A stretch of 64,000 nt of DNA. It comes from Oopsacas minuta (Eukaryota; Animalia; Porifera). Positions 44,763 to 59,258 of the stretch are shown here, one piece after another. The position numbers and the translations under genes were made by a program. Below the pieces are notes generated by a model, which was not told the origin of the DNA, did not search any database, and saw only the letters and a program-made list of their open reading frames with translations. The stretch's first letter is position 1, and every line of letters starts with the position of its first letter. The stretch is from positions 1 through 64,000 of the forward strand of contig JAKMXF010000221.1 in the NCBI GenBank assembly GCA_024704765.1, written 5' to 3'.

Positions 44763-45031
44763 TGTGAGTGTTGTAAGACTAATTTGTAAGAAGATAACAA
44801 TAAAGAATAATACAATAAAGAATAATACATTTAAGAATCTAACCATTTCATGCAAGATAAACAACAATAAGGTAGAATCAAGAATACAACATAAAATCAA
44901 TAAATTCATAACAGGGTAAAATCGGATTCGAAAATGTACAGACAATCCACCTAACAGGATATAATAACATGTATGTACAATTGTATGATAAGTGGAGTTT
45001 TTGATTACTTTGTTACAGTTTCTGCTGACAA

Positions 45032-45529
45032 TTAGGAACTGGTGAGACGCTGGTTACAAGGAATACAAACATTTACAAGTTCTTTAGAAGTTCTAGGAGA
45101 CGTTACTCCAAGAAATGATTTCTTAATCTTCATAGAACATTTTTTACAGCATATATTTCCACAGCTTTGACACATTCTCTTTCTGCGGAAGAAAGGTAAA
45201 ACAATATCACACTTGTGACATACTTCTTGCCTGTCAACTAATTCATTGAAATGTGACTGGAGAGAAGTGAAAGAAAAAGTTCTCTTCTTCTCTCTCAGGG
45301 AAGGCGAAGTGTCGTATGTCATCCGTCTTCTGGGCGTAGTAACACCTGTGTGTGATGCCACTTCATTAACGTCTGTATGATTAGAAGTGACAGGTGTATT
45401 TAATTGGGTCCTGGTCTCATTTACCCTCCCGTTACTCGGACTAGCAGATGCAATTGCAACTAGAATTTGCCAAGGTAAGAAGCATATTGTAAAGAGCTCC
45501 ATTAGCAAGAATGCGAAAATATCTATCAT
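45032..45529 (-). CDS. Short protrudin paralog: hydrophobic N-terminus plus protrudin-type FYVE domain
   Basis: CHKC...RRKRMCQSCGNICCKKCSMKIKKSFLGVTSP...VCIPCNQRL. Shares DNA identity with the 3' end of 46824-47924 (e.g. ggtgagacgctggttacaaggaatacaaacat). Confidence 0.75.
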   Translation of the reverse strand: MIDIFAFLLMELFTICFLPWQILVAIASASPSNGRVNETRTQLNTPVTSNHTDVNEVASHTGVTTPRRRMTYDTSPSLREKKRTFSFTSLQSHFNELVDRQEVCHKCDIVLPFFRRKRMCQSCGNICCKKCSMKIKKSFLGVTSPRTSKELVNVCIPCNQRLTSS

Positions 45530-45646
45530 CGTGCTTTAGTAATGAATGGTAAATAATAGTAACAAATATGCTGCAGCCCCTTGGTAATAGTTTATGGATA
45601 TTAATACGAATTATTAAATGTCAAATATGCGATAATACATTATTTA

Positions 45647-48600
45647 TCATAGATGCCAGAGATTATTAAATGATGGAGTGCGATAAAGTAAGTAATTCAG
45701 TTCTGTTTCAATCTCTCCTTTAGAAAAGGAATACATCTCTCTGCACATACATTGAATAAAACTGGAAAAGAATGGACAGAGTGATCTGGAGTATTAGAGG
45801 GGAAAATTATTTCTCTTCCAAAGCCGAAAAAGGTGAGTTCACAATTAGCACAGTGATTATGTCTAGATTTAACAATAATTCACATAAAGTTTAAACAAAT
45901 CCAAGTTTCCAACTATATACAAACAATAATATAAATAAACGAGCCGCTTCACTTGCGAGCACTCTGTTCGCATATAACTCAGCACTTCACGGCTCGAATT
46001 ACATATATACCCATGCTGAGTAATCTTAGAAAATTTACAATATTATTTGACAAACCTTTGAGTAAATAATGTACTTAGATTAGTGGGTACTCTCTCCATA
46101 TCATCATCATATAATTCGTATAGGATATTCCTCATACAAATATCTTGCAAGTGCTGACAAAGAAATAATAATTATGTGATATTAACGAGACATTTCTAAT
46201 AGCGATAACTTACATCAGGTTGTTTGTTGAGGGAATCATTCCAAATTAAAGGATGCATAAAATTGCTTGTAGCTTTTAGGAATTTCAACTTTTGTAAGAA
46301 TGTCAATTCAATTGGGAGTCCTGGTAGCTCATTCCCTTCTAGATTCAAGAACATCAACTCACGGAGATTACAGAATTTATAAGAAATACGCTTTAATCTA
46401 TTGTATGAAATGTCTAGTTCTCTCAAGTTGCAAAGGCTGTAAATGCTAAAAAATAAATCTACTAAGTAGATATATCTATGTAAATACTGATAGGAACGTA
46501 CCTGTTAGGAAGATCTTCCAACAAACAAAAAGATGCAGAAAGAGTTCGTAAATAAGTGAAATTACTTATCTCTTCAGATATCAACAAGAGAGGATTATTT
46601 CTCAAGTATAATTCGTTAAGGTTTGTAGCAGCAAATATTGAAGAGGGCAGAATCTACAATAAAATATTGTATATACAAATATTCGTTATAGAGCTAAGAT
46701 GTATGTATATAGCCCCAAAGCATAAGTTTAACGATGTTTACACTAATCTCTTGAGTAGAGTACAAAATAAAACGTGTATGTTATATGTGCACAAGTACAC
46801 ACCCAATCATGTCATGTATATTACTAAATGAAGTTCTTCTTTCCTCTACTGTTAGCTGTCTGCTGAGAATCTACACTATCTTGTAGCACCATACGGTTGG
46901 GTCTTAAACTGGGTGACCCGGTGAGACGCTGGTTACAAGGAATACAAACATCTACTGTCTCTTTAGACGCGTTGGGTGCTGTTACTCCAAGATATGATTT
47001 CTTAATCTTCATAGAACAATTTCCGCAGAATGTATTCCCGCACTTCTGACACATTCTTTTCTTTCGATAAATACGTAAAATAGTTTCACATTTGTGACAC
47101 AAATCATGTCTGTCACGTGTCATTCTTCTTCTAGGAGTAGCAACACCTGTCTGTGGTACATCTGGTGGTACAATTTCATTAGCATCTGTCATATTAGGAC
47201 TAAGAGATACATCAGATTGAGATCTGATCTTCTCTTCAGGGCGATTCAAAAATTTCTTCTCTTTACACTTGTTACTTGGTGTAATAAATGAAATGATTAA
47301 ACTTATAATATTTACATTACAACAGAGTAATGTACTCAGTAAGAGGCTGATAGTAACAGAAGGTAGTATAAGGAGGAGGACAGCTATCAGGAATAGAATA
47401 CCAACGAATACCGTAGAATTAAAATGGTTAGCCCATGAAATCAAACAGTAGATACTGTCAAATATCTTTATTAGAGAGTTTAGATTATCTTGTGCAAGGA
47501 GTAGCATAGATCGGAAATCTCTAATATCCTGTTGAATACCTTCTCCTTGTTCTAGTTCCTGTGTTAAATCATTTTGATATGAGTTATTCAAATATATTTG
47601 GTACTTAGGACGGGAGAGCTCTCTATTCTCTGTGGAGTACTGAGTTATGAAGCTAGCAAGCATTAGCAGGAGAGCTGAAGAAGTGAGAATTATTAACGAG
47701 CCTGGAATAAATGTTGGATGAAGAAGTAGAGCGAATAAACTGATAAAAGCTAGCGAAGATAGTAGAGGATATTTCCAGCTCCTTAACAGTATCAAAGACC
47801 TTACGGAAGATCGTAATGGATATAGATATACTATAGCTAGATTGTATGTACGGGTGAGGTACACAATGTCTACATGACGATCTGGTATGCTGACGTCATC
47901 AACTGGTATGTGGTTGTTATTCATAATGCGGTTAGTTGTAATTGTGGAGAGAGGATATCAAGCAGCCTGCTATACTAACAATTTCTATATAGCTATAGAT
48001 GAGATTATGATTGGGTATGTACAAATATTAATTATTAAGAAATACGATAGAGACTCTTGAATTACAAAGAATCGGATATGAAATGTTTGGGATTATTGCA
48101 AATATAGTTTAGTAAATTATAAATAATGAGTTTGGGAACAATAAATATCTGTACAGTGAAGAAATACAAGACTAATATACCACAAAAGCCTATGTATTTT
48201 AATATAATATTAGTAGAAAGCATATCTACGTAATGGATATACAAATTGAATAAATGCCTCGTTAACTTAGAAATTAATTAATTAAGGCATATTAATAGGA
48301 TAAGGAATCGCACGGCATAATTAAAAGGATTTATAACTTTCGTTAGCTGATTTAAAAAATTAAGATAAGTAACTAACTACCTTAAACATATTGAATGAGA
48401 GGTTGAGTACAGTTAGTTTCTTTGCTAAAAGAGATATATCAGGTAAATAGTGTAGGAACTGTGCTTTTAGGTTTAGCTCCCTGCAATCAGCTTCCATACA
48501 CTTAAGTAGAGATACGTCAGAAGGTGACTGCATTGGTTTCTGGGGAGCTAGATACACGTATGTACGTACATAAATTCGGCAAAATATCTTATCCATTGTT

Positions 48601-48801
48601 TCTATGAACAAGTGATAAATTGCAACAAACCAAAGGGAGATCTCCAGCGTTTATCTCCACAGAAGTACCCAGATACAGGACCCTGTAAGACAATATCTCC
48701 CTGGGGGAGATAACCAGTCAAGCTTATTTGTTCCAACTCAGAGTCCTCTAAACTGACTGTAGAGGATAAGTCTAGCTTCTCACGCATGTAGGCCTGTACC
48801 T
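45647..48801 (-). CDS. LRRC63: LRRC63-like leucine-rich repeat protein, multi-exon; possible additional 5' exons at 59258-58524
   Basis: Hand-assembled, phase-compatible exons: 48801-~48630; ~48550-48381 (ELNLKAQFLHYLPDISLLAKKLTVLNLSFN); 46653-46502 (ILPSSIF..LYLRNNPL); 46445-46214 (LRELDISYNRL..LEGNEL..NFMHPLIW); 46153-46056; 45862-45647 (CANC..FGFG..FNVCAERC, TGA). Order and motifs match LRRC63 as recalled. Confidence 0.8.
46824..47924 (-). CDS. ZFYVE27: Protrudin (ZFYVE27), intronless, nested in an LRRC63-like intron
   Basis: VYLYPLRSSVRSLILLRSWKYPLLS hydrophobic hairpin region, and an atypical FYVE CHKC..RKKRMCQKCGNTFCGNC..KSYLGVTAPNASKETVDVCIPCNQRL lacking RRHHCR, as in protrudin. Confidence 0.85.
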   Translation of the reverse strand: MNNNHIPVDDVSIPDRHVDIVYLTRTYNLAIVYLYPLRSSVRSLILLRSWKYPLLSSLAFISLFALLLHPTFIPGSLIILTSSALLLMLASFITQYSTENRELSRPKYQIYLNNSYQNDLTQELEQGEGIQQDIRDFRSMLLLAQDNLNSLIKIFDSIYCLISWANHFNSTVFVGILFLIAVLLLILPSVTISLLLSTLLCCNVNIISLIISFITPSNKCKEKKFLNRPEEKIRSQSDVSLSPNMTDANEIVPPDVPQTGVATPRRRMTRDRHDLCHKCETILRIYRKKRMCQKCGNTFCGNCSMKIKKSYLGVTAPNASKETVDVCIPCNQRLTGSPSLRPNRMVLQDSVDSQQTANSRGKKNFI

Positions 48802-49052
48802 CTATGAAGAAATGTTAATAATTATCACGGTTAGTAACAAATATCATTTTATATATTTCAATTAGACTCAGTGAATTAACAATTTAATATTTAGTACGGT
48901 ATTAGCAATGTTTTAGATATCCAAAATACTTGTAACAGCTAATTATATTTGTATGTAACATTATGTATTAGCTACACAGATAGGAATAATGAAATTTGTT
49001 ACAATATCCAACATATTACAATCTCATAGCTTTTTGGAAGTAAGATAGCTAT

Positions 49053-52000
49053 TTAATCATCTCGGAAACAAAGTTGTTCCAACTCTGTAATTTTCTGAAT
49101 ACAGCCTTCGTACTTGTCTCCTGATTCAGAGAGGAGTCTCTTTAGATCGTCAATTTGCTGGTCATATGCAGATTTCAACACTTTATACATTCTTAACTCC
49201 CGTAGAGTGTATCCGAGCTTAAGTCTGAGGAGCTCTAGTTGTTTCTTCTTAGTACGGAGTAGCTTATCGCTTGGTTTAGAATCAGAGTGAATATATTGAG
49301 GTTTCTTGAAGTAGACAATATCACTGTGATCTTGTATATCAGGAGTTGAGGTGCCTGGTAGACTATCAGTCCTTCCTTCTAAAATTGAAGTCTCTAAATC
49401 ATGATATCTCATCTTCAATTCTTTATTCTCTTGACACAGTTTGCGAATGAGATTTGGTAAAGAAACATGCTCAGAGTCTGTAGAATAGATGTCCAGTTCT
49501 TCTCCAATGTTTAACAGGTCTATCGGTATCTCTCCTTGTAGGGATATAATATCCAAGGTATACTCCTGTTTAAGTTTACCCAGTTCCTCTTCAAGGTCTC
49601 TCTTATTTCTCATAACTCTCTCAAACTGTTCCTCAGAAGTTAATGATAGTCTACTCAGTTCATGTTTGGAGCGAGACAACTCTGTTTGGATTTCTGCAAG
49701 ACTCTGAGTCAGCTGACCGTTCTTATTACTTAGATCTTCAATGAACTTTTGTAATTTAGCTCTCTCTTCTTTATTTCCTTCTAAGATACTTGGTATTTCT
49801 GTTTCAAATGTGTTTTTAAGACGGGAATTCTCCTCAGACAGAGCTATATTCTTGTGTTCTAATTGTTCAGCTCGTTGAGTTACTTCAGTCAATTTCTTAT
49901 CCTGTAAATTTTCGTATTCAGACAACATAGCCTGTTTCTTCTCTCTCAACTCATCAAGATTTCTTACTAACTCTAAAAGCATTTGTTCTTTGTCTGCTAG
50001 ATGATTGCGTTGAGTTTCTAGCTCGTCATGACACCGAATAACTTCTGTTTTGTTCTGAGTTAGTTCTAATGATAGAGCTTCAACCTCATTGGCTTGTGTA
50101 CTAGAGAGTTGTGTTAGTGTGTTGGTGTCTAGCTTCATACTGTCTGATAGCTTAGTGTTAACTCCTTCTAATCGTGTTACCTCAGTCTGTGCCTTATAGA
50201 GCTGAGCGTTTAACTGCTCCACCTGATTAGAGGAGGTTATCTGTAGATGCTGCATTCTATTATTTAACAGCTCCCAGTCTCTCTTTTGCTGAGTATTTTT
50301 CTCTTTCAACTCATCAACTTGTGTACTCAATGAATTTTCTTTATCAGAACATTGTTGTTTATGGAGAAATCGTTCTTGTTCCAATTCATGTCTCAGGGAA
50401 AGTACAATCCTCTCTCTGTCTTGTAACTCCTCGTCAAGTAACTTCCTTCCCTCCTGCTCGCTCTTGAGCTGGTTAACTAGTCGCTGAGACTTGCTTTTCT
50501 CCTCAGATAAAGCTAGAGTATTAGTATTATTCAGCTCACTAAATTCTGTTAACTTAGCTCTGTCATTATCAGACACGTTTCTAAGAGATAACAACTCTAC
50601 TCTAGTTTCTTCTAGCAGTTTATTCGTATCACAAATTTGGCTAGCTTTCTGGAGGAGAATACTGATAACTCTGTGTCTACTACTCAATACTGTGTCTACT
50701 AGCGTGATCAGCTGTGGAGTATCAGTACTATTACTAGATTGCTGTAAGGCATCCGATAATTCTGATTGATCAGTAGCTTGCTCAAAACGAGCTAGTTTAG
50801 AGAACTCTACACAGAATGCTTTGTTGTCCTGTGTGACTTTATTACATACAGATTCTAGTACTTGAACTAACATGTTTATACGATCCATCTTTTGAGCATT
50901 AGAATGAATTCTCTCAATCTTACCGTCCTCTATTTCCCCTCGTAATCTTTGTAACTCACTCTCCGCAGTTTCTGCTATACTCTCAAGAGCATTAGAGTTC
51001 TGAGTAACGTCATTATTAACCAGCTGGAGAGATACAATACAACCATGTGATTTAACCAGATCTTGTTTCAGGTTAATTATCAAACTGCGACTCTCTCTCA
51101 ATTCTCTTCTCATCTCTCTCATCTCTCCGCTGAAATAATCAGGTGTGTCTGGTTGAGGAGAGGATTCTCCTGTTAACTCAAGTTGTGACTGAAGAATATC
51201 TTCTTGTTGTCTGGGGTTCTGGTTAAGAAGAGCGAATACGTCATGTGGTAACATTTGTGATAGGGTCAATGGTTCTGATTTGTTTGTGTGTGTTGTATTG
51301 AAGTTAACCTTAGTTTGGAGTGAAGCATTATTTGCTAGAAGTTCTAGAATCTTCTCTTCACAGCATAGCTTATTTCCTTCTAGTTTCTGTAACATATTTT
51401 TCAATACGCCAGCCTCCTCAGTATACCTCTCAATACGTGACTGGTCAGCTATCAGCTGTTGGACTGTAACAGCTTGTTTCTGAATAATATTTCTAAGATT
51501 TTCAAAGGCTTGAGGATATGAATTCTCTTCTGAAACAGAACAACTGACTTGATCGAATAGAGATTCCATTTCCTGAGTTAGGCACTGATGATCAGCTTCT
51601 GAGAACTTCACAGCTAATGCCAGTTCTGATATTATCTGGCTAAGCAGTGATATCAGTGTAGATAAGGCTTGCTTGCTATCTTCCTGAGAATTAGCCTTTT
51701 CTAACGCTATAGATGCATCTACCTGCAGATTAGCTATCTCTCTCTCTAAAATCAAACATTCTTGTACCTTATTCTGTAAGCTACTCCTTAGCTGTACGTG
51801 ACTCTGTTCTAACAGGGAGTAGTCTGATTCTAATTGTCTCTTATCTGTTACACTAAGAGTAAGGTTCTCTTTTAGATTTACAAAACTTTGTTTTCTCATC
51901 TCTAACTCGTTAGTGAGATTCTGGTTAGCTTCATGAGCAGCTTCTAATGCCTCGTTTAAATCCTGTGTGTTTCCATTTTGTGTATCTCTCTCTACTCTCT

Positions 52001-54077
52001 GGAGTTCTCTGTTGAGACGAGTAATCTCTTCATCAGCTGTCTTCTTAGCTTCCATATATTGTAGAGTTTGTTGCATTTCCTGTGTTAATTTCAATTCTAC
52101 TCCTTCCTTCTCTACTTTTAATCTCTCTATTTCCCTCTTCAATGTATCCAATACATCTAACTCGACCTGCTGTCCTTGTTTCATTTCTAGCTCAGACAAT
52201 ATCTCATCTCTTCCTCTCAACTGCTGCTTGAGATCAGAATTCATAGTTTGTTGAGTGAGTAACTCTTCTTCAATATCTCCCCTTTCCTTGCGAACTGATT
52301 GCAGTTCTGATTGAATTATACGTTTTGAAGAATCCTGTTCGTTCAATTCTTGAGCCAGCTGTTTATTAGCTTGACGTAATCGATTACAATTGTCTTGCTC
52401 TTGCTCAAGTTGTGTCAGAAAATAAGACTCATTCTCTTTCAATCGTAACTTAGTAGATTGTTCTTCCTCTTGTAATTGTAGTCTTAATCTCTGTACTTCC
52501 TGTTCCGCACTTATTCTCATATTCTGCTCTTCGTTTAGTTGAGCTATTCTGTCCCTGAGTTGAGTATTGTCTAGCTTAACAGTTTCTAACTCAAGCAATG
52601 GGGCGTGACTAACGAGACTGGTAGGACTAAGGATATTCTTCTCTCGCTCTACTCTCAGTTCTTCTTCAAGATGTAATTGATAAGCTTTCAGCTGTTCGAA
52701 TTCACTGGCTAACATATCCCTAGCTCTAGTTGCCTCCTGTAGATCAGCTGACTCTTCATTAGAGGATACAGCTCTGCTTAGCTTAAAGTTCTCACTCTCT
52801 AGATCCATACACTTAATTCTCAGCTGTTCTATCTCTTTATTAAAATCAGCTGAGTCTGCGGTTAATCTGTTAGGAGATCTAACATGTTCTTGCTCTTGAA
52901 TAATATTCACGAGACGTGCTCTCTCGCGTGTACTCTCGTCTAGCGCTTCTCTCAGGGCTGTCAGCTGATGAGAGAGTCCGTCTGTGTCAGCATAAACAAG
53001 AAAGTTGTCCGGAGATACCTTGTCATCAGGAGTGCTGAGGAGAGAGGGGATAGGGGAGGGTGTATCCATAGGAGTACCATAAGACACGCTAGTGAGGTCA
53101 AGGGAGTCTGTTGAGGCCCTCAGATGATAGTAATCCCTGTTATCTTGTGAGAGTATGTGAAAAGGAGGAGAAGAGAGGGGAGGAAGCATAGGGTGATGAA
53201 TAGGAGACCCTATAGTCCATTGAGATTGATTTGAAATAGTGTGTAGCTCGTACAAGTTGTCACTCAAAGGAGGAGGCATTGAATGGCCAGATATAGGTAA
53301 GAAATGAGTATCTATTTCAGGAGGATATTGTCTTAACTCCTCTAGACCGTATTGAGCATGGCGTGATAGGTCAGGGGATAATCGAGAGAAGGCTGAAGGG
53401 GGAGAGGTAGGTATCTTAGGGTAAGAAGGAGGATGAGGGATAAGGGTAACATCAGGGGAGTAGAGAGGATCAGTTTCAACAGGATAGACTATTAGATCAG
53501 CTGATAATGGTGATGAGTGTGTATGATGATCAGAATCTGGGTTATATGATTGATAGTCAATAGGTGCAGGATCTTGTATAACTTCTCTTTTATCAGCTTC
53601 ACTAATAATTTCGTGAATAGAACTCTGATTTTGATGAGGTTGAGACTCGAAGATATGAGGGGGTGGAGACACAGGTGTACTACAGTCAGGGGCAGGAGAA
53701 TTATCTTGAGGAGATATAGATGGCTCTACCTCCGCCTCTTGAGTATGTTGTGAGTGTGGAATATCTACAGAGTTCATAGGAGATAGAGCATCCAACTCAC
53801 TATCATCATCGTGGAAATGCGAGGGCGTGGAGATATCACGAATATCAGTGTGTTCTAATTGGAGATGAGGTACATGGTTGCTCGTAGGAGGAGATGTCGC
53901 CAGGGTATCTGGATATACGGGTAGGTTAGATTTGCTCGGTAGTTGAGTTGTGGATTTTCTCGGAGATATAGGGAGTGGAATCTTAGTTCTCTGATTAGGG
54001 TTGGGAGAGGAGATGCACCCAGAGCTGGCAGGCACTCCCACACTCGAATTCCTATCGAACCGAGGGATCTTACTCAT
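49053..54077 (-). CDS. 1674-aa intronless coiled-coil protein with a Pro/Ser-rich N-terminus and SxIP-like motifs
   Basis: Uninterrupted ORF. About 370 aa of disordered N-terminus (SKIP, TKIP, SNLP), then over 1200 aa of heptad-rich helix. No family recognised. Confidence 0.85.
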   Translation of the reverse strand: MSKIPRFDRNSSVGVPASSGCISSPNPNQRTKIPLPISPRKSTTQLPSKSNLPVYPDTLATSPPTSNHVPHLQLEHTDIRDISTPSHFHDDDSELDALSPMNSVDIPHSQHTQEAEVEPSISPQDNSPAPDCSTPVSPPPHIFESQPHQNQSSIHEIISEADKREVIQDPAPIDYQSYNPDSDHHTHSSPLSADLIVYPVETDPLYSPDVTLIPHPPSYPKIPTSPPSAFSRLSPDLSRHAQYGLEELRQYPPEIDTHFLPISGHSMPPPLSDNLYELHTISNQSQWTIGSPIHHPMLPPLSSPPFHILSQDNRDYYHLRASTDSLDLTSVSYGTPMDTPSPIPSLLSTPDDKVSPDNFLVYADTDGLSHQLTALREALDESTRERARLVNIIQEQEHVRSPNRLTADSADFNKEIEQLRIKCMDLESENFKLSRAVSSNEESADLQEATRARDMLASEFEQLKAYQLHLEEELRVEREKNILSPTSLVSHAPLLELETVKLDNTQLRDRIAQLNEEQNMRISAEQEVQRLRLQLQEEEQSTKLRLKENESYFLTQLEQEQDNCNRLRQANKQLAQELNEQDSSKRIIQSELQSVRKERGDIEEELLTQQTMNSDLKQQLRGRDEILSELEMKQGQQVELDVLDTLKREIERLKVEKEGVELKLTQEMQQTLQYMEAKKTADEEITRLNRELQRVERDTQNGNTQDLNEALEAAHEANQNLTNELEMRKQSFVNLKENLTLSVTDKRQLESDYSLLEQSHVQLRSSLQNKVQECLILEREIANLQVDASIALEKANSQEDSKQALSTLISLLSQIISELALAVKFSEADHQCLTQEMESLFDQVSCSVSEENSYPQAFENLRNIIQKQAVTVQQLIADQSRIERYTEEAGVLKNMLQKLEGNKLCCEEKILELLANNASLQTKVNFNTTHTNKSEPLTLSQMLPHDVFALLNQNPRQQEDILQSQLELTGESSPQPDTPDYFSGEMREMRRELRESRSLIINLKQDLVKSHGCIVSLQLVNNDVTQNSNALESIAETAESELQRLRGEIEDGKIERIHSNAQKMDRINMLVQVLESVCNKVTQDNKAFCVEFSKLARFEQATDQSELSDALQQSSNSTDTPQLITLVDTVLSSRHRVISILLQKASQICDTNKLLEETRVELLSLRNVSDNDRAKLTEFSELNNTNTLALSEEKSKSQRLVNQLKSEQEGRKLLDEELQDRERIVLSLRHELEQERFLHKQQCSDKENSLSTQVDELKEKNTQQKRDWELLNNRMQHLQITSSNQVEQLNAQLYKAQTEVTRLEGVNTKLSDSMKLDTNTLTQLSSTQANEVEALSLELTQNKTEVIRCHDELETQRNHLADKEQMLLELVRNLDELREKKQAMLSEYENLQDKKLTEVTQRAEQLEHKNIALSEENSRLKNTFETEIPSILEGNKEERAKLQKFIEDLSNKNGQLTQSLAEIQTELSRSKHELSRLSLTSEEQFERVMRNKRDLEEELGKLKQEYTLDIISLQGEIPIDLLNIGEELDIYSTDSEHVSLPNLIRKLCQENKELKMRYHDLETSILEGRTDSLPGTSTPDIQDHSDIVYFKKPQYIHSDSKPSDKLLRTKKKQLELLRLKLGYTLRELRMYKVLKSAYDQQIDDLKRLLSESGDKYEGCIQKITELEQLCFRDD

Positions 54078-54085
54078 CCTACTTT

Positions 54086-54100
54086 CTGAAAAAATTAACG
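54086..54100 (-). promoter_or_regulatory. Unpaired 3' splice-acceptor-like site 8 nt before the ATG (candidate trans-splice acceptor)
   Basis: Minus strand reads cgttaattttttcag|aaagtaggATG. Similar sites precede most genes in the window. Confidence 0.5.
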
Positions 54101-55430
54101 AAATTATATTGTGTAAATGTTATGTATAACTACTATAGAACAGGTATACTCTCATTTATCCAGATAATAATGAAACTGTAAATATGATAGATAAACAGAG
54201 AAACCACCGAATAGTGGTCAAATACAAGTACATAGTATTACACACATGTAATCATACTGTACTACACGTGTAGACTATCCACACAACCTTTATATCACTT
54301 CCTGAGTGATACGTAAAGGGAAATTAACATTTTATATCTAATTAGAATAAAATATTGCTGGGATTGGATTTCCATCTAGAAGAATCTGTTGGCAACACGA
54401 AAAACACCTGGAAACTGGGAAACATTCAAAGGAGTGTTTGTTATGAATCTTAGTACAAACTCATAAATCATGTGTCCAGAATACAAGTGTAGTAAGAACT
54501 CATATCTATACGTATATTCTGGCAGCATTTAGTTTGATGATTATCATTCTACAGATTATTGAACACTGAAATCTAGACGCATATATGAATTATTCTCTAT
54601 AACTTTTGACTAATGAAAAAGTTAATTTAGATAAGATGGACACAATGAAAGTTAATGGACTTTGTATGATACACGAGAAGCAAACTGCAATCGTAGCCAT
54701 ACTAATTGCTCAATTGGTATCCAGTGATGTACATATAATACGTATGTATGGTTGGAATTTGATCCTCCAGATCGATCCAATGAGCAACCAAACCAACCGA
54801 ATTGCCATGAAAAGAGGATATTCAATATTAATTAGCACTCAAATGTAATTTACGTATATCTATTCCCTATCATAGTAATACATACCACATGGTTAAATTC
54901 TATGAAACAATTCTTTTATTACTATCGTAAGTTTTATATAATCTGGCTTGAAGCCTGTATGAATAACACAGAGCTGAATCCTTCTCAAAGATAAGATGCT
55001 CGCGTGAAAATACTGATAGATTCTAACATGATAATTACCAGCAACCGAAGTTATAAATTACTCAATGTAATAGTCAAAAATTCTGTACAATATCTATCTA
55101 TTAAACGCAATTTAGAAACTGGAATACACTCAGAGCTGATTTTCGGCAGACAGAGGTATTTGAGTGTTCCCCAAAAAGTTTAAGTTTTAAAAGAAAATTC
55201 AGTCGCTTACACATTTCGTCGAGGCAGATAGAGTAGACATTAGGGATGCAATGAATAAGAAATTATTACAATACTTACAAGTATATGTGAATGTAAACAA
55301 GTTTGCAAATGTTCAGGAAAGGCAAAAATCAAATGCTTTAGAATTATATTAATAAATTAACAGGCCATGTGTGTTAGTAAAAAATCCTAGTATATAACTA
55401 GATACATTGAATTGGCTATAATTGCTTATA

Positions 55431-56549
55431 TTACATTTTCATTCCAGAGAACCAGGCTCCCATGTCGAAAGGGTCTGTGAGAGCATCGCAGAGGAATGGG
55501 TGCTTGAGCAGGGCCTCATAACTTGGACGAGAGTCGCAATCGAGACTGAGACAGGATTTAACAACTTCTCCGAATTCAGGGGAGCGGTCAGAGGGAGGAT
55601 TGGGAGGTGGACTTTTGGTTATGGCTATGATGATTTCGAAAATAGACATTTTATCTCTCTTCATGTATGGCTGTACCCCTGTGGCTAATTCGTACATAGT
55701 CACTCCAAAAGCCCACAGGTCAGATACGTATGTATACTGCCCAGTACTGATGATTCGTTCTGGAGCTAGATAAGCAGTCGTGCCGACTTTGGTATTAGCA
55801 TGATTCTCAACAAGGTAACCTGCTATACCCATATCACAGAGCTTTATCTCTCCTTTAGTGTTGATAAGAATGTTAGAAGGTTTAATGTCACGGTGCATGT
55901 AATTTATCTTCAGTAAGAAGTCTAGGGCTGAAATCACGCTAAATGCGATTTTCTTGAGAGCTCCTTCTGAGAATGTTTCTTTGTTTGTGTAGACTACTTT
56001 TAGGACTTTGTCCAGTGACGAGTCCATCAACTCTTCTCCAAGATATATCTGTCCTTCATGCAAGAATGTTCCGTAGAAGTTTATAATGTAGGGACAGGAT
56101 TGAGTCTGCCTGAGAACTTTAGCGTCTTCTAGAGCAGAAGAAGTAGTCTGGTGAGGATGGTCAACTGATAGTTGCATCTTTTTGATAGCGATTATATGCC
56201 CTGTAGATATGCTACGCATTTTGTACACTGTAGCAAACTGTCCTTGTCCTATAACATCTAATTGCTCTAGATCTTCATAGGATACTTTGGCATATTGAGA
56301 CTTACCAAACATAAAGTTACCTTCTATGTCGATCTCATCGATGTTTGGCGTAGGTTTTGGGTCTGTGGATGTACTAGAAAGTATTTTTAGAGGCGGCATG
56401 GGTTCTCGTTTTTTTCTCGGGGGCTTGTCTGTATTTGTAGAACTGGTTTGCATTGGAGAGACCGGAGACTCTTCAACTGAAAGAACAGGATCTGCCTTTG
56501 CAACTTCTGGCTGTTCTGAAATATCTTTTGGTTTGTTTGTGTCTACCAT
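55431..56549 (-). CDS. MAP kinase kinase (STE7 family), atypical, intronless
   Basis: D-site-like RKKREPMPPLKI, IGQGQFATV, IAIKKM, CPYIINFYG, ELMDSSLDK, HRDIKPSNIL, KLCDMGIAGYLV, YLAPERI, SDLWAFG. Confidence 0.9.
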   Translation of the reverse strand: MVDTNKPKDISEQPEVAKADPVLSVEESPVSPMQTSSTNTDKPPRKKREPMPPLKILSSTSTDPKPTPNIDEIDIEGNFMFGKSQYAKVSYEDLEQLDVIGQGQFATVYKMRSISTGHIIAIKKMQLSVDHPHQTTSSALEDAKVLRQTQSCPYIINFYGTFLHEGQIYLGEELMDSSLDKVLKVVYTNKETFSEGALKKIAFSVISALDFLLKINYMHRDIKPSNILINTKGEIKLCDMGIAGYLVENHANTKVGTTAYLAPERIISTGQYTYVSDLWAFGVTMYELATGVQPYMKRDKMSIFEIIIAITKSPPPNPPSDRSPEFGEVVKSCLSLDCDSRPSYEALLKHPFLCDALTDPFDMGAWFSGMKM

Positions 56550-57507
56550 TTGTACTTTTTCTATTGCTGTTGATGCTGATAAGAGGTTTACAAACTTGTT
56601 GCTTAGTTACTCTTCCTACAAGCTTATATACTAAATGCTAGTGTGGTGCTCTGATAGAATAAAATTGATTAACCGATAGACTATGGATATTTAGAATTAT
56701 ATAGCTATATATGACACATTCAAATTCGTGCAAATTGCCGTGAATATCTAAAATAAATCTGAGCAACAAAATCATTAAATCCTTTGAATTAGGGATAGCA
56801 GTTTAGTTATAGTTTTCTCATAAAACATTATCATAAATTATATGCTTCGGCTGGAAATTTACAAAATTATTGAATTTATTATATAATTGCAAATCAAGCT
56901 TTGGTGTTTCATAGAAATAATTATTTCCGAAATAAAATCTAGGATGAATGTTAAACATCTTAAGAGATGAATATGTAGTTCCTATTCGGCAGCAATTTGT
57001 TTGTTTATTATCTAAAAAACAGTATGAATTCATTTGTTTATATATTCCTACAAAAATTCGAACAATAAGTGTTAAATATATATAATAAAATATGATAAAA
57101 GAGAGCAGAGCAAAAGCTGTAGCGAATAACTAAGGTATTAGATAATATTAACCACTACTAAAACTAGGAACATTGATACAGTAGTAGATCTCTGGTGATG
57201 TTTCGATTATCAGGTAATAGGTATGTCACTACTTGCATAGAAACAGAAAGGTTCAGTGGAATCACGAGTGAGCGTGATGATCACTCTATATAATTGATAT
57301 TAGCAATTTAATCTACTTGCTACAAGCAGAATCAAATCCGAGCCACAATATATTTGGTCAAATATCTCCTTTTAAAGTAATAATTTAGTTCAGATAATTC
57401 TCAAGTGTTTACAGTATCATTAGAGAGAATAATGAGGCAACATGATGTCTCATTAAAACCTGAATGGATCTCATGCGCTGTGGGATAAAGATAAGATACG
57501 ATATACG

Positions 57508-57691
57508 CAGGGTTTCATCCAGATTTTCTGAACCATACGCCTAAAATCTTAGCCTTCATATTTACGCGCGCCTAGAGTATACATTTAGTATTACGGTATG
57601 GGGTCTTCCGCTAATTTTGGCGCGCCTAGGTCTATTTTTGCTGAAATTTATGCGCCTGTAGCCGCGTCGCATATACCTGGATGAAACCCTG
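57508..57691. mobile_element. hAT-superfamily MITE, 184 bp
   Basis: Perfect 15-bp TIR cagggtttcatccag / ctggatgaaaccctg and a perfect 8-bp TSD gatatacg (57500-07, 57692-99). Confidence 0.95.
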
Positions 57692-58523
57692 GATATACGT
57701 AACTACGGTCAATGCAATTTCGGATTGTTTTGTATACAAGAAAACGGAGGACAATTAGTTTGAGTTAGAGTATAATTAATTGTGTATAGAGAACCTGACA
57801 TCAGCAGAATATGTAACAAAGCAAAGTATGGTACAACCCAACATATTTCCAAAGTGGGCTGTATTAGTAAAGATTTAAAAGAAAGACAGAGCTGATGAGA
57901 AGACTAACGCTTTCGTCATAATATAATTAATTCAAAAGAGTAAAATATGGATCTGTGTTCTGATCTGATTGGATAACAAGTGTATTATGCCGATTAAACA
58001 GTGCACGAGCGAATACAAATCATAATCAAAGTTTAGAAATTAAGGTATATCTATCGTATATGCCCAATAAGCCAGTGAGCATGGGACGAAAGTAATATTG
58101 AAGGAGATAATATAATAATTGTGTAATTATATGTTACAACAATTACTGGAAATTATTATCTTACTAAAAGAAATATCAGTGATATAATCTGTAATTAATT
58201 AGTAATTCGAGAAAATTCTCGAGATTCGGATAACTTATTGGTGTGGTTGAACAAAGAATGGAAAGTTCAAAAAAGAGATCACACTCTTCGACAAATGAAC
58301 ATACTTTACAATCACATTGCATAATTCAGGGAACCGGGGTGCATAATAATAACAATGATGTATTGCGTAGCAAGCGGTTAAAAATAAATCCATATAATAT
58401 GATGAATCACGACATTTCCAGCTCGGAATACTAAGAACTGTTTACTTCAGGAATTATGCAACATCAATTATGTCACCACCTAGGGCTTAAGAACCCTCTC
58501 ATAAAGTAAACTAAATAACTCAC

Positions 58524-59258
58524 GTAATAAGAACTGGTGTTTAGGTATTCTAACTTGTGGTATTTCAACATCAACTAAAGGGAATATAGACAATAAGAGA
58601 TGTGTTAATTGATTAACCATACAATCTACTGACCTTCTAATTTGAGAGTGTTGAGGTTCATTTGAGAAGGGGGAAATGCTTCCAGCCAACTAGTCAGCTT
58701 TTTATAATTTTGATTAGATTTTATTACAGTTGAAAGTGAAGGCATAAAATAAGATTTTCTTTTTGCAAGTATTTGAAAGTCATTAAGAGTGAAGTGTTCT
58801 TTTGATGTAGGAGGAGGGGAAGAGAACAGCTGTGCATAGATAGAAGCTTGATTGTTGAAAACCTTTTTATTTGTAGGAAAGAATGGGGCGGGACCTTTAG
58901 GTACTAAAGAGTGAAGGATAGTTCCAACTTCTCGATGAGCTGAGCGGGATTTGGTAGGACTGTTGGTAGGAGGCTTGGGAAATGCGGTAGATTCCAGCTG
59001 GTTAATCATAGAGCTTTCTTGAATTGTGAGTGTGTTACCATTCTGTGACCCATTGTGTATACTCCTGATAATATTGTTGTTAGAGGTGATAGAGGCGGGT
59101 ATAGCAGTAGATGCATGGGAATGAGGAGATTCTATATTACTACGATTTGATGATTTCGTGGTGGTCCGAATACTCATACGTTCTGGTTTTGGAGTTTGTT
59201 TCTTTGGTCTTCTCAATAATGGAACAGTTAGTATCGTTTGCTCACTTACAGATTCCAT
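58524..59258 (-). CDS. Ser/Pro/Asn-rich coding exon(s), candidate 5' part of the LRRC63-like gene
   Basis: ORF MESVSEQTILTVPLLRRPKKQ... A 38-nt GT-AG intron candidate shifts into LAGSISPF..PKHQFLL, ending at a phase-1 C|GTGAGT donor that is compatible with the acceptor at 48801. Confidence 0.55.

Follow-up and report, generated by a model that had tools for sequence, protein, structure and literature searches.

How can two genes on the same strand both be expressed when one of them lies complete within an intron of the other? This question is raised by a locus of the glass sponge Oopsacas minuta on contig JAKMXF010000221.1 (assembly GCA_024704765.1), analysed here as a stretch of 64,000 nucleotides (the window), in which a sequence-only reading had placed a whole protrudin (ZFYVE27) gene within one of the introns of an LRRC63-like host. 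All positions below are those of the window.

Host mRNA is spliced across the nested gene

The part of the host that is covered by RNA contigs (X4), together with the gene nested in it, consists of the following features.

48631–48801, minus strand: host exon 3; 3′ boundary set by the RNA joint 48631>48547
48381–48547, minus strand: host exon 4; RNA joints on both sides; ends ...NLSFNMFK, donor GTAGTT
46654–48380, minus strand: host intron 4; 1727 nt, phase 0, holding the nested gene; X4 joint 46653/48381
46824–47924 (stop included), minus strand: nested intronless protrudin gene, 366 aa; ORF, Pfam, PDB and Atlas matches, RNA depth about 990
46502–46653, minus strand: host exon 5; ILPSSIF...LEDLPN; RNA joints on both sides, LRR Pfam matches
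46214–46445, minus strand: host exon 6; LRR repeats; RNA joints, LRR_8 match (E 4e-7)
46056–46153, minus strand: host exon 7; RNA joints 46214>46153 and 46056>45862
45697–45862, minus strand: host exon 8; Cys-rich C-terminal tail; RNA joint; stop TGA at 45699–45697

These data show that host mRNA arises by conventional cis-splicing at GT-AG borders, with 48381 joined to 46653 over the nested gene. The junction on which the sequence-only reading turned is present in an X4 RNA contig at depth 1118, with GT..AG borders (CT..AC on the plus strand) and exactly 1727 nt skipped, and the acceptor side of the intron (...ttattgtag) is followed by an in-frame LRR exon starting at 46653. The joint comes from a single contig whose shorter side is 30 letters, a length expected with k=31 unitigs, and so counts as evidence of presence. 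The four other introns predicted for the host (83, 56, 60 and 193 nt) were also joined in X4, at depths of 945–1508, and depth was 0–23 across introns and spacers versus about 1000 across exons. The spliced host protein was collinear with the LRRC63-type proteins P0007 and P0008 and aligned to them without a gap over the 48381/46653 junction (E 8e-59). Every coordinate of the earlier reading proved correct on the minus strand (exon end 48381, restart 46653, intron 48380..46654, 366-aa ORF inside), and its main claim, same-strand nesting of a complete protrudin gene in an LRRC63-like intron, is upheld by the RNA joint, the ORF and the homology across the junction.

The host is best described as LRRC63-like, judging from its resemblance to P0007 and P0008, the latter of which has LRRC63 as its nearest named Atlas clusters (0.99). 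The full host model aligns to both across aa 120–543, with a collinear match of about 31–36% over 430–470 aa, which extends from the N-terminal motifs NYKKLT and RIPxxQxLL through the LRR block to the Cys-containing tail encoded by exon 8. With the LRR part of the host alone, however, the clusters of LRRC28, LRRC58 and LRRC69 come close to LRRC63 in score.

The nested gene is a complete, expressed protrudin gene

It was confirmed that a complete protrudin gene lies wholly within one host intron, on the same strand, and is expressed. Pfam detected a FYVE domain in the nested ORF (E 7.7e-7) along with weak Reticulon and Pex24p matches; the best PDB match was the FYVE domain of human ZFYVE27 (1x4u; E 3.9e-14), the next FYVE domain reaching 9e-6, and Atlas protrudin clusters matched at 0.94 and 0.90. 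Hydrophobic stretches at aa 53–96 and 165–217 agree with the N-terminal membrane hairpin or transmembrane segments of protrudin. Orthologues in glass sponges are 361–366 aa long with 58–76% identity, and are called as free-standing genes in five other assemblies. By eye, a putative D-A-x-E remnant (NMTDANE) of an FFAT (VAP-binding) motif can be seen in the nested protein, without a counterpart in P0002.

The nested protein thus shares with protrudin/ZFYVE27 the C-terminal atypical FYVE finger, the N-terminal hydrophobic hairpin segments and a length of about 360–410 aa. It differs in that the sponge gene is intronless and in that O. minuta also carries an extra, 165-aa C-terminal paralogue. 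The human ZFYVE27 gene has many exons. Genes of glass sponges are mostly single-exon (PMC10282587), so that the intronless state is not diagnostic of a retrocopy. An exact-protein look-up of the 366-aa ORF found it absent from public records, which is explained by the public model being a chimera. No AATAAA follows the nested stop in the genomic sequence, and an Rfam scan of 44900–49200 with E up to 1 gave zero matches, and hence no known small RNA in the host intron. Short Logan contigs with orthologous protrudin were all DNA-type metagenome contigs.

A spliced leader is joined to the nested gene and to a downstream FYVE gene

Two further features are defined by loose ends of RNA contigs and by an additional ORF.

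47994–93 and 47986–85, minus strand: two AG acceptors of the nested mRNA; X4 loose ends with non-genomic leader letters
45032–45540 (CDS 45529–45032), minus strand: second FYVE gene, 165 aa; ORF, FYVE match (E 5e-8)

The genomic 5′ end of the nested mRNA is shown to lie at the acceptors 47994 and 47986, joined to a spliced leader encoded elsewhere. Both acceptors are located 60–70 nt 5′ of the nested ATG, where X4 depth exceeds 1000 and drops to 23 directly upstream. The loose end at 45540, in the second FYVE gene, bears the same leader as acceptor 47986; the letters at the two sites overlap into one leader, about 22 nt long and with AG at its end, so that AG acceptors of two genes receive the same leader. 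At 47994, the 10 letters differ from it, also stand before an AG and represent a second leader variant. The leader had no match in the 64-kb window with up to 2 mismatches, nor in 310 kb (the window plus the loci compared) with up to 3. A local shared 5′ cis exon was also considered as the source of the leader letters and is ruled out within the window by the absence of any match. A paper by Douris and colleagues from 2010 reportedly deals with a hexactinellid leader. A published spliced leader exists for the glass sponge Aphrocallistes vastus (PMC10282587).

The acceptor of the second FYVE gene lies at about 45534–45540, some 160 nt past the host stop, and an RNA contig (45506–45791) runs unbroken from host exon 8 over the host stop into this gene, which is absent from all relatives compared. 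The sequence-only reading had suggested that the nested mRNA could be excised from the host pre-mRNA by trans-splicing. The leader at the nested acceptors and at a second gene supports the trans-splicing part of that idea; a leader by itself does not amount to excision from host pre-mRNA.

The arrangement is conserved in glass sponges

Judged by comparison with relatives, the nested arrangement is shown to be old and conserved in glass sponges, in line with the synteny that the earlier reading had proposed to look for. Six other glass-sponge assemblies have the same intron position, phase 0, donor, acceptor and nested gene, with orthologous host introns of 1635–4402 nt; extra ORFs that widen the host intron at locus L008 had no Pfam match. 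The acceptor cluster upstream of the nested gene is likewise conserved in relatives, as is a 20-nt block (ATTAATAYYTGWGCATAA-like) located 25–45 nt 5′ of the cluster. This block stays beside the nested gene though its distance from the host donor ranges from 375 to 3034 nt, and the rest of the intron is not alignable among relatives.

Alternative gene models and the source of the nested transcript

Two other gene models must be weighed against nesting. In the public annotation, a 565-aa protrudin-LRR fusion (nested aa 1–352, joined 46875>46653) stands beside a separate 114-aa upstream gene; both calls (the fusion as P0001) are present in GCA_024704765.1, and the GT that follows 46875 has phase 0, which would keep the join in frame. 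We consider this model very improbable, since the X4 contigs contain no 46875>46653 joint while 48381>46653 occurs at full depth, RNA depth persists over the nested stop codon, the orthologues are called free-standing at 361–366 aa in five other assemblies, and LRRC63-type proteins align through the 48381/46653 junction. The same GT qualifies the earlier statement that no chimeric protein would form: it holds for splicing of the host donor to a nested acceptor, but not for the nested GT after 46875 joined to 46653. The number of codons given there before a stop (3–4) was roughly right, as joining the host donor to 47992, 47984 and 47969 leads to stops after 5, 4 and 3 codons. A reading in which the LRR halves belong to two genes, or meet through an assembly join, with protrudin merely lying between them, is scarcely credible. 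The public annotation does split the halves, and the joint evidence is one unitig with a 30-letter side; however, the joint is canonical and as deep as those of the four neighbouring host introns, the gapless alignment over it is to single-transcript LRRC63-type proteins, the layout is identical in six independent assemblies, and the DNA-type contigs X1 and X3 span the region unbroken.

Given the nested structure, we put the chance at about even that host and guest share a transcript from the host promoter with two alternative fates. Polymerase would read from the host promoter through the nested gene. In one fate, cis-splicing across the intron would give host mRNA; in the other, the leader would be trans-spliced at the nested acceptors and cleavage and polyadenylation between 46823 and about 46700 would release protrudin mRNA, destroying the host message on that transcript. 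The nested acceptors would then be used for the leader but not by the host donor. In an operon-like way, the FYVE gene downstream would be freed from the host 3′ end. An X4 contig (47965–48410) links host exon 4 without a break, by way of intron sequence, to the nested 5′ UTR, and X4 depth in the spacer 48836–48972 is 0; a unitig contig spanning two genes is not proof of one transcript. In the same RNA sample, the host, the nested gene and the downstream FYVE gene lie within about 2–3 fold of each other in depth, contig depth being a poor measure of expression. No chimera of host donor and nested acceptor was found in the X4 contigs, which drop rare variants; the nested acceptors are carried on the host pre-mRNA, yet the contigs contain no such chimera, so that these acceptors behave as trans-only. 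Among reads and contigs, none showed host exons and the nested gene in processed form on one molecule.

Alternatively, nested protrudin may be transcribed independently, from a promoter of its own within the approximately 390 nt that separate the host donor from the acceptor cluster. Its short outron would be replaced by the leader, while host polymerases would read through and the unit would be removed as an intron, so that DNA and not transcripts would be shared. We take this to be a serious contender with rather less than an even chance. The conserved non-coding block just 5′ of the acceptor cluster moves with the nested gene in all relatives; it could be the gene's own promoter, and is counted here against a shared transcript. 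In C. elegans, splicing occurs in cis and not in trans at an acceptor that is preceded by a donor on its own RNA, the outron rule expecting the leader on RNAs without an upstream donor, and by this rule the leader of the nested mRNA would speak for a separate start. Unspliced RNA 5′ of the nested acceptors also reaches only about 2% of the mature level. Against a separate promoter, the acceptors and poly(A) signals of the guest must also be present in the host pre-mRNA, and yet host mRNA is plentiful and no chimera is seen. The acceptors would therefore have to be passed over on host RNA while being used on the RNA of the guest itself, and an additional means of discrimination would be required. 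If the TATA-like box were the promoter, transcription would start only 10–20 nt from the acceptors, too short a distance for a branch point. The near-equal depth of the neighbouring units and the operon-like geometry of the downstream FYVE gene also argue for the shared transcript.

A probable larger host with further same-strand guests

The host is probably larger than the earlier reading had assumed, with its start near 59258 and its N-terminal exons at 59258–58524, on the evidence of sequence conservation and synteny. The features concerned are as follows.

58634–59258, minus strand: predicted host exon 1; ORF with ATG at 59258, homology to P0007/P0008
58524–58574, minus strand: predicted host mini-exon 2; VDVEIPQVRIPKHQFLL, donor GTGAGT
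48802–58523, minus strand: predicted 9.7-kb host intron with two further same-strand genes inside; sequence conservation and synteny
56549–55431, minus strand: MAP2K-like kinase; kinase Pfam match
54077–49053, minus strand: coiled-coil protein, 1674 aa; ORF in the predicted 9.7-kb host intron

The public 114-aa model starts at ATG 48787 inside exon 3. Coding conservation extends 5′ of this ATG up to the acceptor at 48802, and the position reads ATC and GTG in two relatives (L001 and L004, respectively), from which we infer that the host continues upstream. Exon 1 would code for aa 1–208 and the first base of split codon 209 in a 553-aa LRRC63-like model; its donor is GAAG/GTCAGT, and the full model with the NYKKLT motif aligns to P0007/P0008. 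At three loci of relatives (L010–L012), exon 1 shows 53–68% identity and lies upstream of the kinase gene. The peptide of mini-exon 2, with the GT that follows it, is also present at L010, L011 and L012 and matches RIPxxQxLL of P0007/P0008.

Between 41.5 and 64 kb, all ORFs of at least 70 aa that match a known family or a syntenic gene are on the minus strand; plus-strand ORFs of 72–102 aa in this interval lie inside or antisense to minus-strand genes, and none is supported. Four 1.4-kb Logan contigs with the kinase of a relative followed the genome collinearly throughout and carried no leader, and so were uninformative. More tentatively, the LRRC63-like gene might be a 13.6-kb 'intronic operon' conserved in glass sponges, in which one promoter would serve three guests and the downstream FYVE gene, each freed by leader trans-splicing plus polyadenylation, and host mRNA would form only where every guest is skipped; as a whole, we regard this extension as unlikely. 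The guests in it would be the MAP2K-like kinase, the 1674-aa coiled-coil protein and protrudin. If true, the choice between cis- and trans-splicing would set the ratio of five proteins, and the arrangement would help to explain why same-strand nesting is common in this leader-using glass-sponge lineage.

Meaning of the locus and comparison with known systems

At this locus, the public gene calls of O. minuta need correction: the 114-aa fragment, the 565-aa chimera and, probably, an N-terminal ORF called separately are replaced by two genes, namely protrudin with 366 aa and the LRRC63-like host with about 553 aa. The locus also illustrates why the O. minuta gene set lists only 83 nested genes versus 2432 in A. 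vastus, where these make up 12% of genes (PMC10282587); that study noted for O. minuta that automatic annotation often fuses host and guest. With leader acceptors of the guest on the host pre-mRNA that the host donor leaves unused in the contigs, it offers a test locus for the separation of cis- and trans-splicing in an early-branching animal, in a case that is clean, conserved and RNA-supported.

Nested genes and a spliced leader are already published for glass sponges, and the LRRC63/protrudin pair is one more instance. The ctenophore Hormiphora californensis has 2357 nested genes, many of them parallel with their host (PMC8527503), so that the expectation that nested genes are usually antisense, from which the sequence-only reading had started, is not a useful prior. 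Such glass-sponge and ctenophore genes resemble the present pair in that a complete, mostly single-exon guest lies in one intron of a compact non-bilaterian genome that uses a spliced leader. The two studies (PMC10282587, PMC8527503) provide counts, and do not analyse the LRRC63/protrudin pair, the strand relation in sponges, or the sharing of one RNA by leader addition and host splicing; the pair described here is supported by joints in RNA and by a leader, and recurs in six further assemblies.

Further parallels are found elsewhere. At the cholinergic gene locus, VAChT/unc-17 lies inside the first intron of ChAT/cha-1, which is likewise a complete same-strand gene in a host intron, long conserved, with a common region that is alternatively processed. 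The cholinergic genes, however, have a promoter and a non-coding 5′ exon in common, are cis-spliced and serve one pathway, whereas in O. minuta no exon is seen to be shared, protrudin and LRRC63 are not known to be functionally linked, and the 5′ end of the guest comes from a trans-spliced leader. This last feature recalls the spliced-leader operons of nematodes and tunicates, with which the locus shares a leader at an AG just 5′ of the start codon, a downstream FYVE acceptor about 160 nt past the host stop and a long run of same-strand genes. In classical operons the genes are consecutive, whereas the leader-receiving protrudin of O. minuta occupies an intron of the gene upstream. On any one RNA, freeing the guest and completing the host message would therefore be mutually exclusive.

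Host splicing across the nested gene

The host, an LRRC63-like gene on the minus strand, breaks off after the residues NLSFNMFK at 48381, where its leucine-rich repeat (LRR) exon is followed by GTAGTT, and its frame is picked up again only at 46653 (ttattgtag, then ILPSSIF...LYLRNNPL). This phase 0 gap of 1727 nt encloses, on the same strand, the 366-aa protrudin (ZFYVE27-like) ORF at 47924-46824, exactly as the sequence-only reading had placed intron and guest.

Four sequencing runs of one sample contain the stretch, as does a single run from a near relative. Coverage of 45000-49100 is even in X1 and X3, which therefore look like DNA. Run X4 behaves as RNA-seq: its depth is ~1000 over exons, drops to 23 over 48014-48287 and is 0 over 48836-48972. 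Its contigs contain five joints (CT..AC on the plus strand, GT..AG on the minus strand) that coincide exactly with the introns predicted from the host frame, each joint being one k=31 unitig with a shorter side of 23-40 letters.

Splice joints in the X4 contigs
48631>48547, minus strand, skips 83 nt, X4 depth 945.5
48381>46653, minus strand, skips 1727 nt, X4 depth 1118.1
46502>46445, minus strand, skips 56 nt, X4 depth 1507.6
46214>46153, minus strand, skips 60 nt, X4 depth 1174.6
46056>45862, minus strand, skips 193 nt, X4 depth 1174.6

The RNA junction 48381-46653, which had been proposed as the decisive check of the nesting, is thus present in the contigs at depth 1118.1. No joint from the host donor to a nested acceptor was found in the X4 contigs, which can miss rare forms.

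A spliced leader on the guest mRNA

Non-genomic letters terminate X4 contigs at 47986, 47994 and 45540. Those at 47986 and 45540, taken in minus-strand orientation, overlap as a single leader of ~22 nt ending in AG, and the leader junctions coincide with AG acceptors in the genome. At 47994, the 10 loose letters differ from this leader and also stand before an AG; we read them as a second leader variant. The unspliced unitig ends at 47965, exactly where k=31 places it for a branch at 47994. The acceptor pair precedes the protrudin ATG by 60-70 nt, with no upstream ATG between the acceptors and the start codon, and since X4 depth falls from >1000 to 23 at the acceptors, nearly all nested mRNAs begin there. 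Neither the 64-kb window nor any fetched locus contains the leader sequence, so it does not come from a shared exon nearby; a ~37-nt trans-spliced leader is described in the glass sponge A. vastus (PMC10282587). Host mRNA spliced across the guest and guest mRNA bearing a leader are both abundant in the same sample.

The nested gene is expressed (X4 contig 47210-47895, depth 989). Its protein contains a Pfam FYVE finger (E 7.7e-7) and gives weak Reticulon and Pex24p matches over the hydrophobic regions aa 53-96 and 165-217. Among solved structures, human ZFYVE27 gives the best match with its FYVE domain (1x4u, E 3.9e-14), well ahead of other FYVE domains, and the closest Atlas clusters are those of protrudin (0.94, 0.90, 0.90).

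The window corresponds to positions 1-64000 of contig JAKMXF010000221.1 in the Oopsacas minuta assembly GCA_024704765.1. In the public annotation, the nested ORF matches, at 100% identity, part of P0001, a 565-aa O. minuta entry called "Leucine-rich repeat-containing protein 63-like" and named "Protrudin" in UniRef. This entry is a chimera: with the GT that follows 46875 taken as donor, protrudin residues 1-352 continue at 46653, the acceptor of the host, and on into the LRR exons beyond it. The upstream LRR exons were called separately as a 114-aa gene (48787-48360) reading into the intron. Neither model is supported by the RNA contigs, and the 46875>46653 joint is absent from those of X4, in which rare forms can be missed.

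Extent of the host gene

Over 299 residues, the spliced 323-aa host product (48787-45697) matches P0007 (36% identity, E 8e-59) and P0008 (35%, E 3e-53), single-contig, transcript-sized LRRC63-type proteins of other organisms; the alignment crosses the exon junction ungapped and extends through the Cys-containing tail at the C-terminus. The nearest named Atlas clusters of P0008 are LRRC63 (0.99). The label "LRRC63-like" is reasonable and falls short of proven orthology, because the LRR part alone is also near LRRC28, LRRC58 and LRRC69.

Host coding must start upstream of the ATG at 48787, since this codon is replaced in related glass sponges (ATC in L001, GTG in L004), whereas the preceding peptide E(V/L)QAY and an acceptor at 48802 are conserved. 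An ORF at 59258-58634 and a 51-nt mini-exon at 58574-58524 (donor GTGAGT) join in phase to 48801, and the resulting 553-aa model aligns to P0007 at residues 120-543 (E 6e-61). Both exons are kept in three relatives (L010-L012) at 53-94% identity, upstream of the kinase gene. The host is probably larger than 48787-45697 and appears to begin at 59258; a predicted joint 58524>48801 would create a 9.7-kb intron (48802-58523) holding two more same-strand genes.

Genes inside the predicted 9.7-kb host intron
56549-55431, minus strand, MAP2K-like kinase
54077-49053, minus strand, coiled-coil gene, 1674 aa

A second FYVE gene of 165 aa (45032-45540, CDS 45529-45032, minus strand) starts ~160 nt after the host stop. 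It is expressed with the same leader as protrudin, joined at a third acceptor 4 nt upstream of its ATG, and is present in the public annotation. Its alignment with protrudin begins at the last hydrophobic hairpin and reaches the C-terminus, with ~44% identity overall and 69% in the FYVE finger. Because it is missing from all six related assemblies, it is a partial duplicate of the Oopsacas lineage, corresponding to the C-terminal 45% of protrudin. An X4 contig (45506-45791, mean depth 483) runs unbroken from host exon 8 through the host stop into the FYVE coding region; either the host 3' UTR overlaps the downstream gene or a bicistronic RNA is abundant.

Conservation in glass sponges

Protrudin orthologues (76-58% identity) were placed on contigs of five other assemblies, and the sixth was reached via the kinase orthologue. 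All six relatives share the order coiled-coil gene, LRR exons 3-4, protrudin, LRR exons 5-8 and cadherin on one strand. The host intron, 1635-4402 nt long across relatives, has its donor AA(G/A)|GT after the same codon and its acceptor AG before (I/V/S)LPSS in 6/6. Its only alignable non-coding parts are the acceptor cluster, the subsequent CAGGCTTCT..TAGGCTCCTA motif and a block ~20 nt further upstream.

In the alignment of the nested gene's 5' non-coding region, this island (47945-48035, minus strand) comprises a ATTAATAYYTGWGCATAA-like block, the acceptor cluster (..TCTYAGCAGTATAG) and the 5'-UTR motif, which contains an internal direct repeat. It may correspond to a promoter, branch point or UTR element.

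Two relatives have a host intron expanded to 4.4 kb (L008:2967-7368) and 3.3 kb (L005:4064-7365), the extra DNA lying between host donor and nested gene; overlapping ORFs (75-264 aa) in that of L008 have no Pfam match. A low-depth contig from another sample (X5) over 48184-48965 is ~96% identical to the window, with a 63-nt stretch of the host intron (48255-48319) exchanged for 66 other letters; it probably stems from either a close relative or a population that has diverged. Positions 46273, 46352, 46419 and 46561 differ from the assembly at full depth in X3 and X4 and not in X1 (A447T, M420I, E398V and one silent change in the host protein), and these differences are allelic or individual, not editing.

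Origin of the host and guest RNAs

We infer, at roughly an even chance against the main rival, that transcripts from the host promoter are partitioned between two fates: cis-splicing across the guest would yield the host mRNA, and leader trans-splicing with 3' cleavage would yield the protrudin mRNA. Host pre-mRNA must contain the nested acceptors, but no contig shows the host donor using them. Continuous RNA at low level extends from host exon 4 into the 5' UTR of the guest, and an unbroken contig runs from host exon 8 into the downstream gene that receives the leader. Depths of the units differ by no more than 2-3 fold, and every gene between 41.5 and 64 kb with annotation or homology support is on the minus strand. 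Counting against partition, the RNA links are contigs and show no single molecule that joins host and guest, and under the nematode outron rule only RNAs that lack an upstream donor should receive a leader. The conserved block upstream of the acceptors, which may be a promoter, also weighs against it and favors the rival, in which the guest's own promoter inside the host intron drives the protrudin mRNA; we consider this a serious possibility, at somewhat under an even chance.

Comparison with known nested genes

The same-strand nesting of protrudin is real and well supported, and this kind of arrangement is already known. In A. vastus, nested genes make up 12.4% of genes, and the low count in O. 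minuta (83) was ascribed to an annotation artefact in which guests are fused to hosts (PMC10282587). Many nested genes of the Hormiphora genome are parallel with their host, requiring a complex processing system (PMC8527503). What this locus adds is a correction of the gene models, a view of how deeply the arrangement is conserved and direct leader evidence for this pair.
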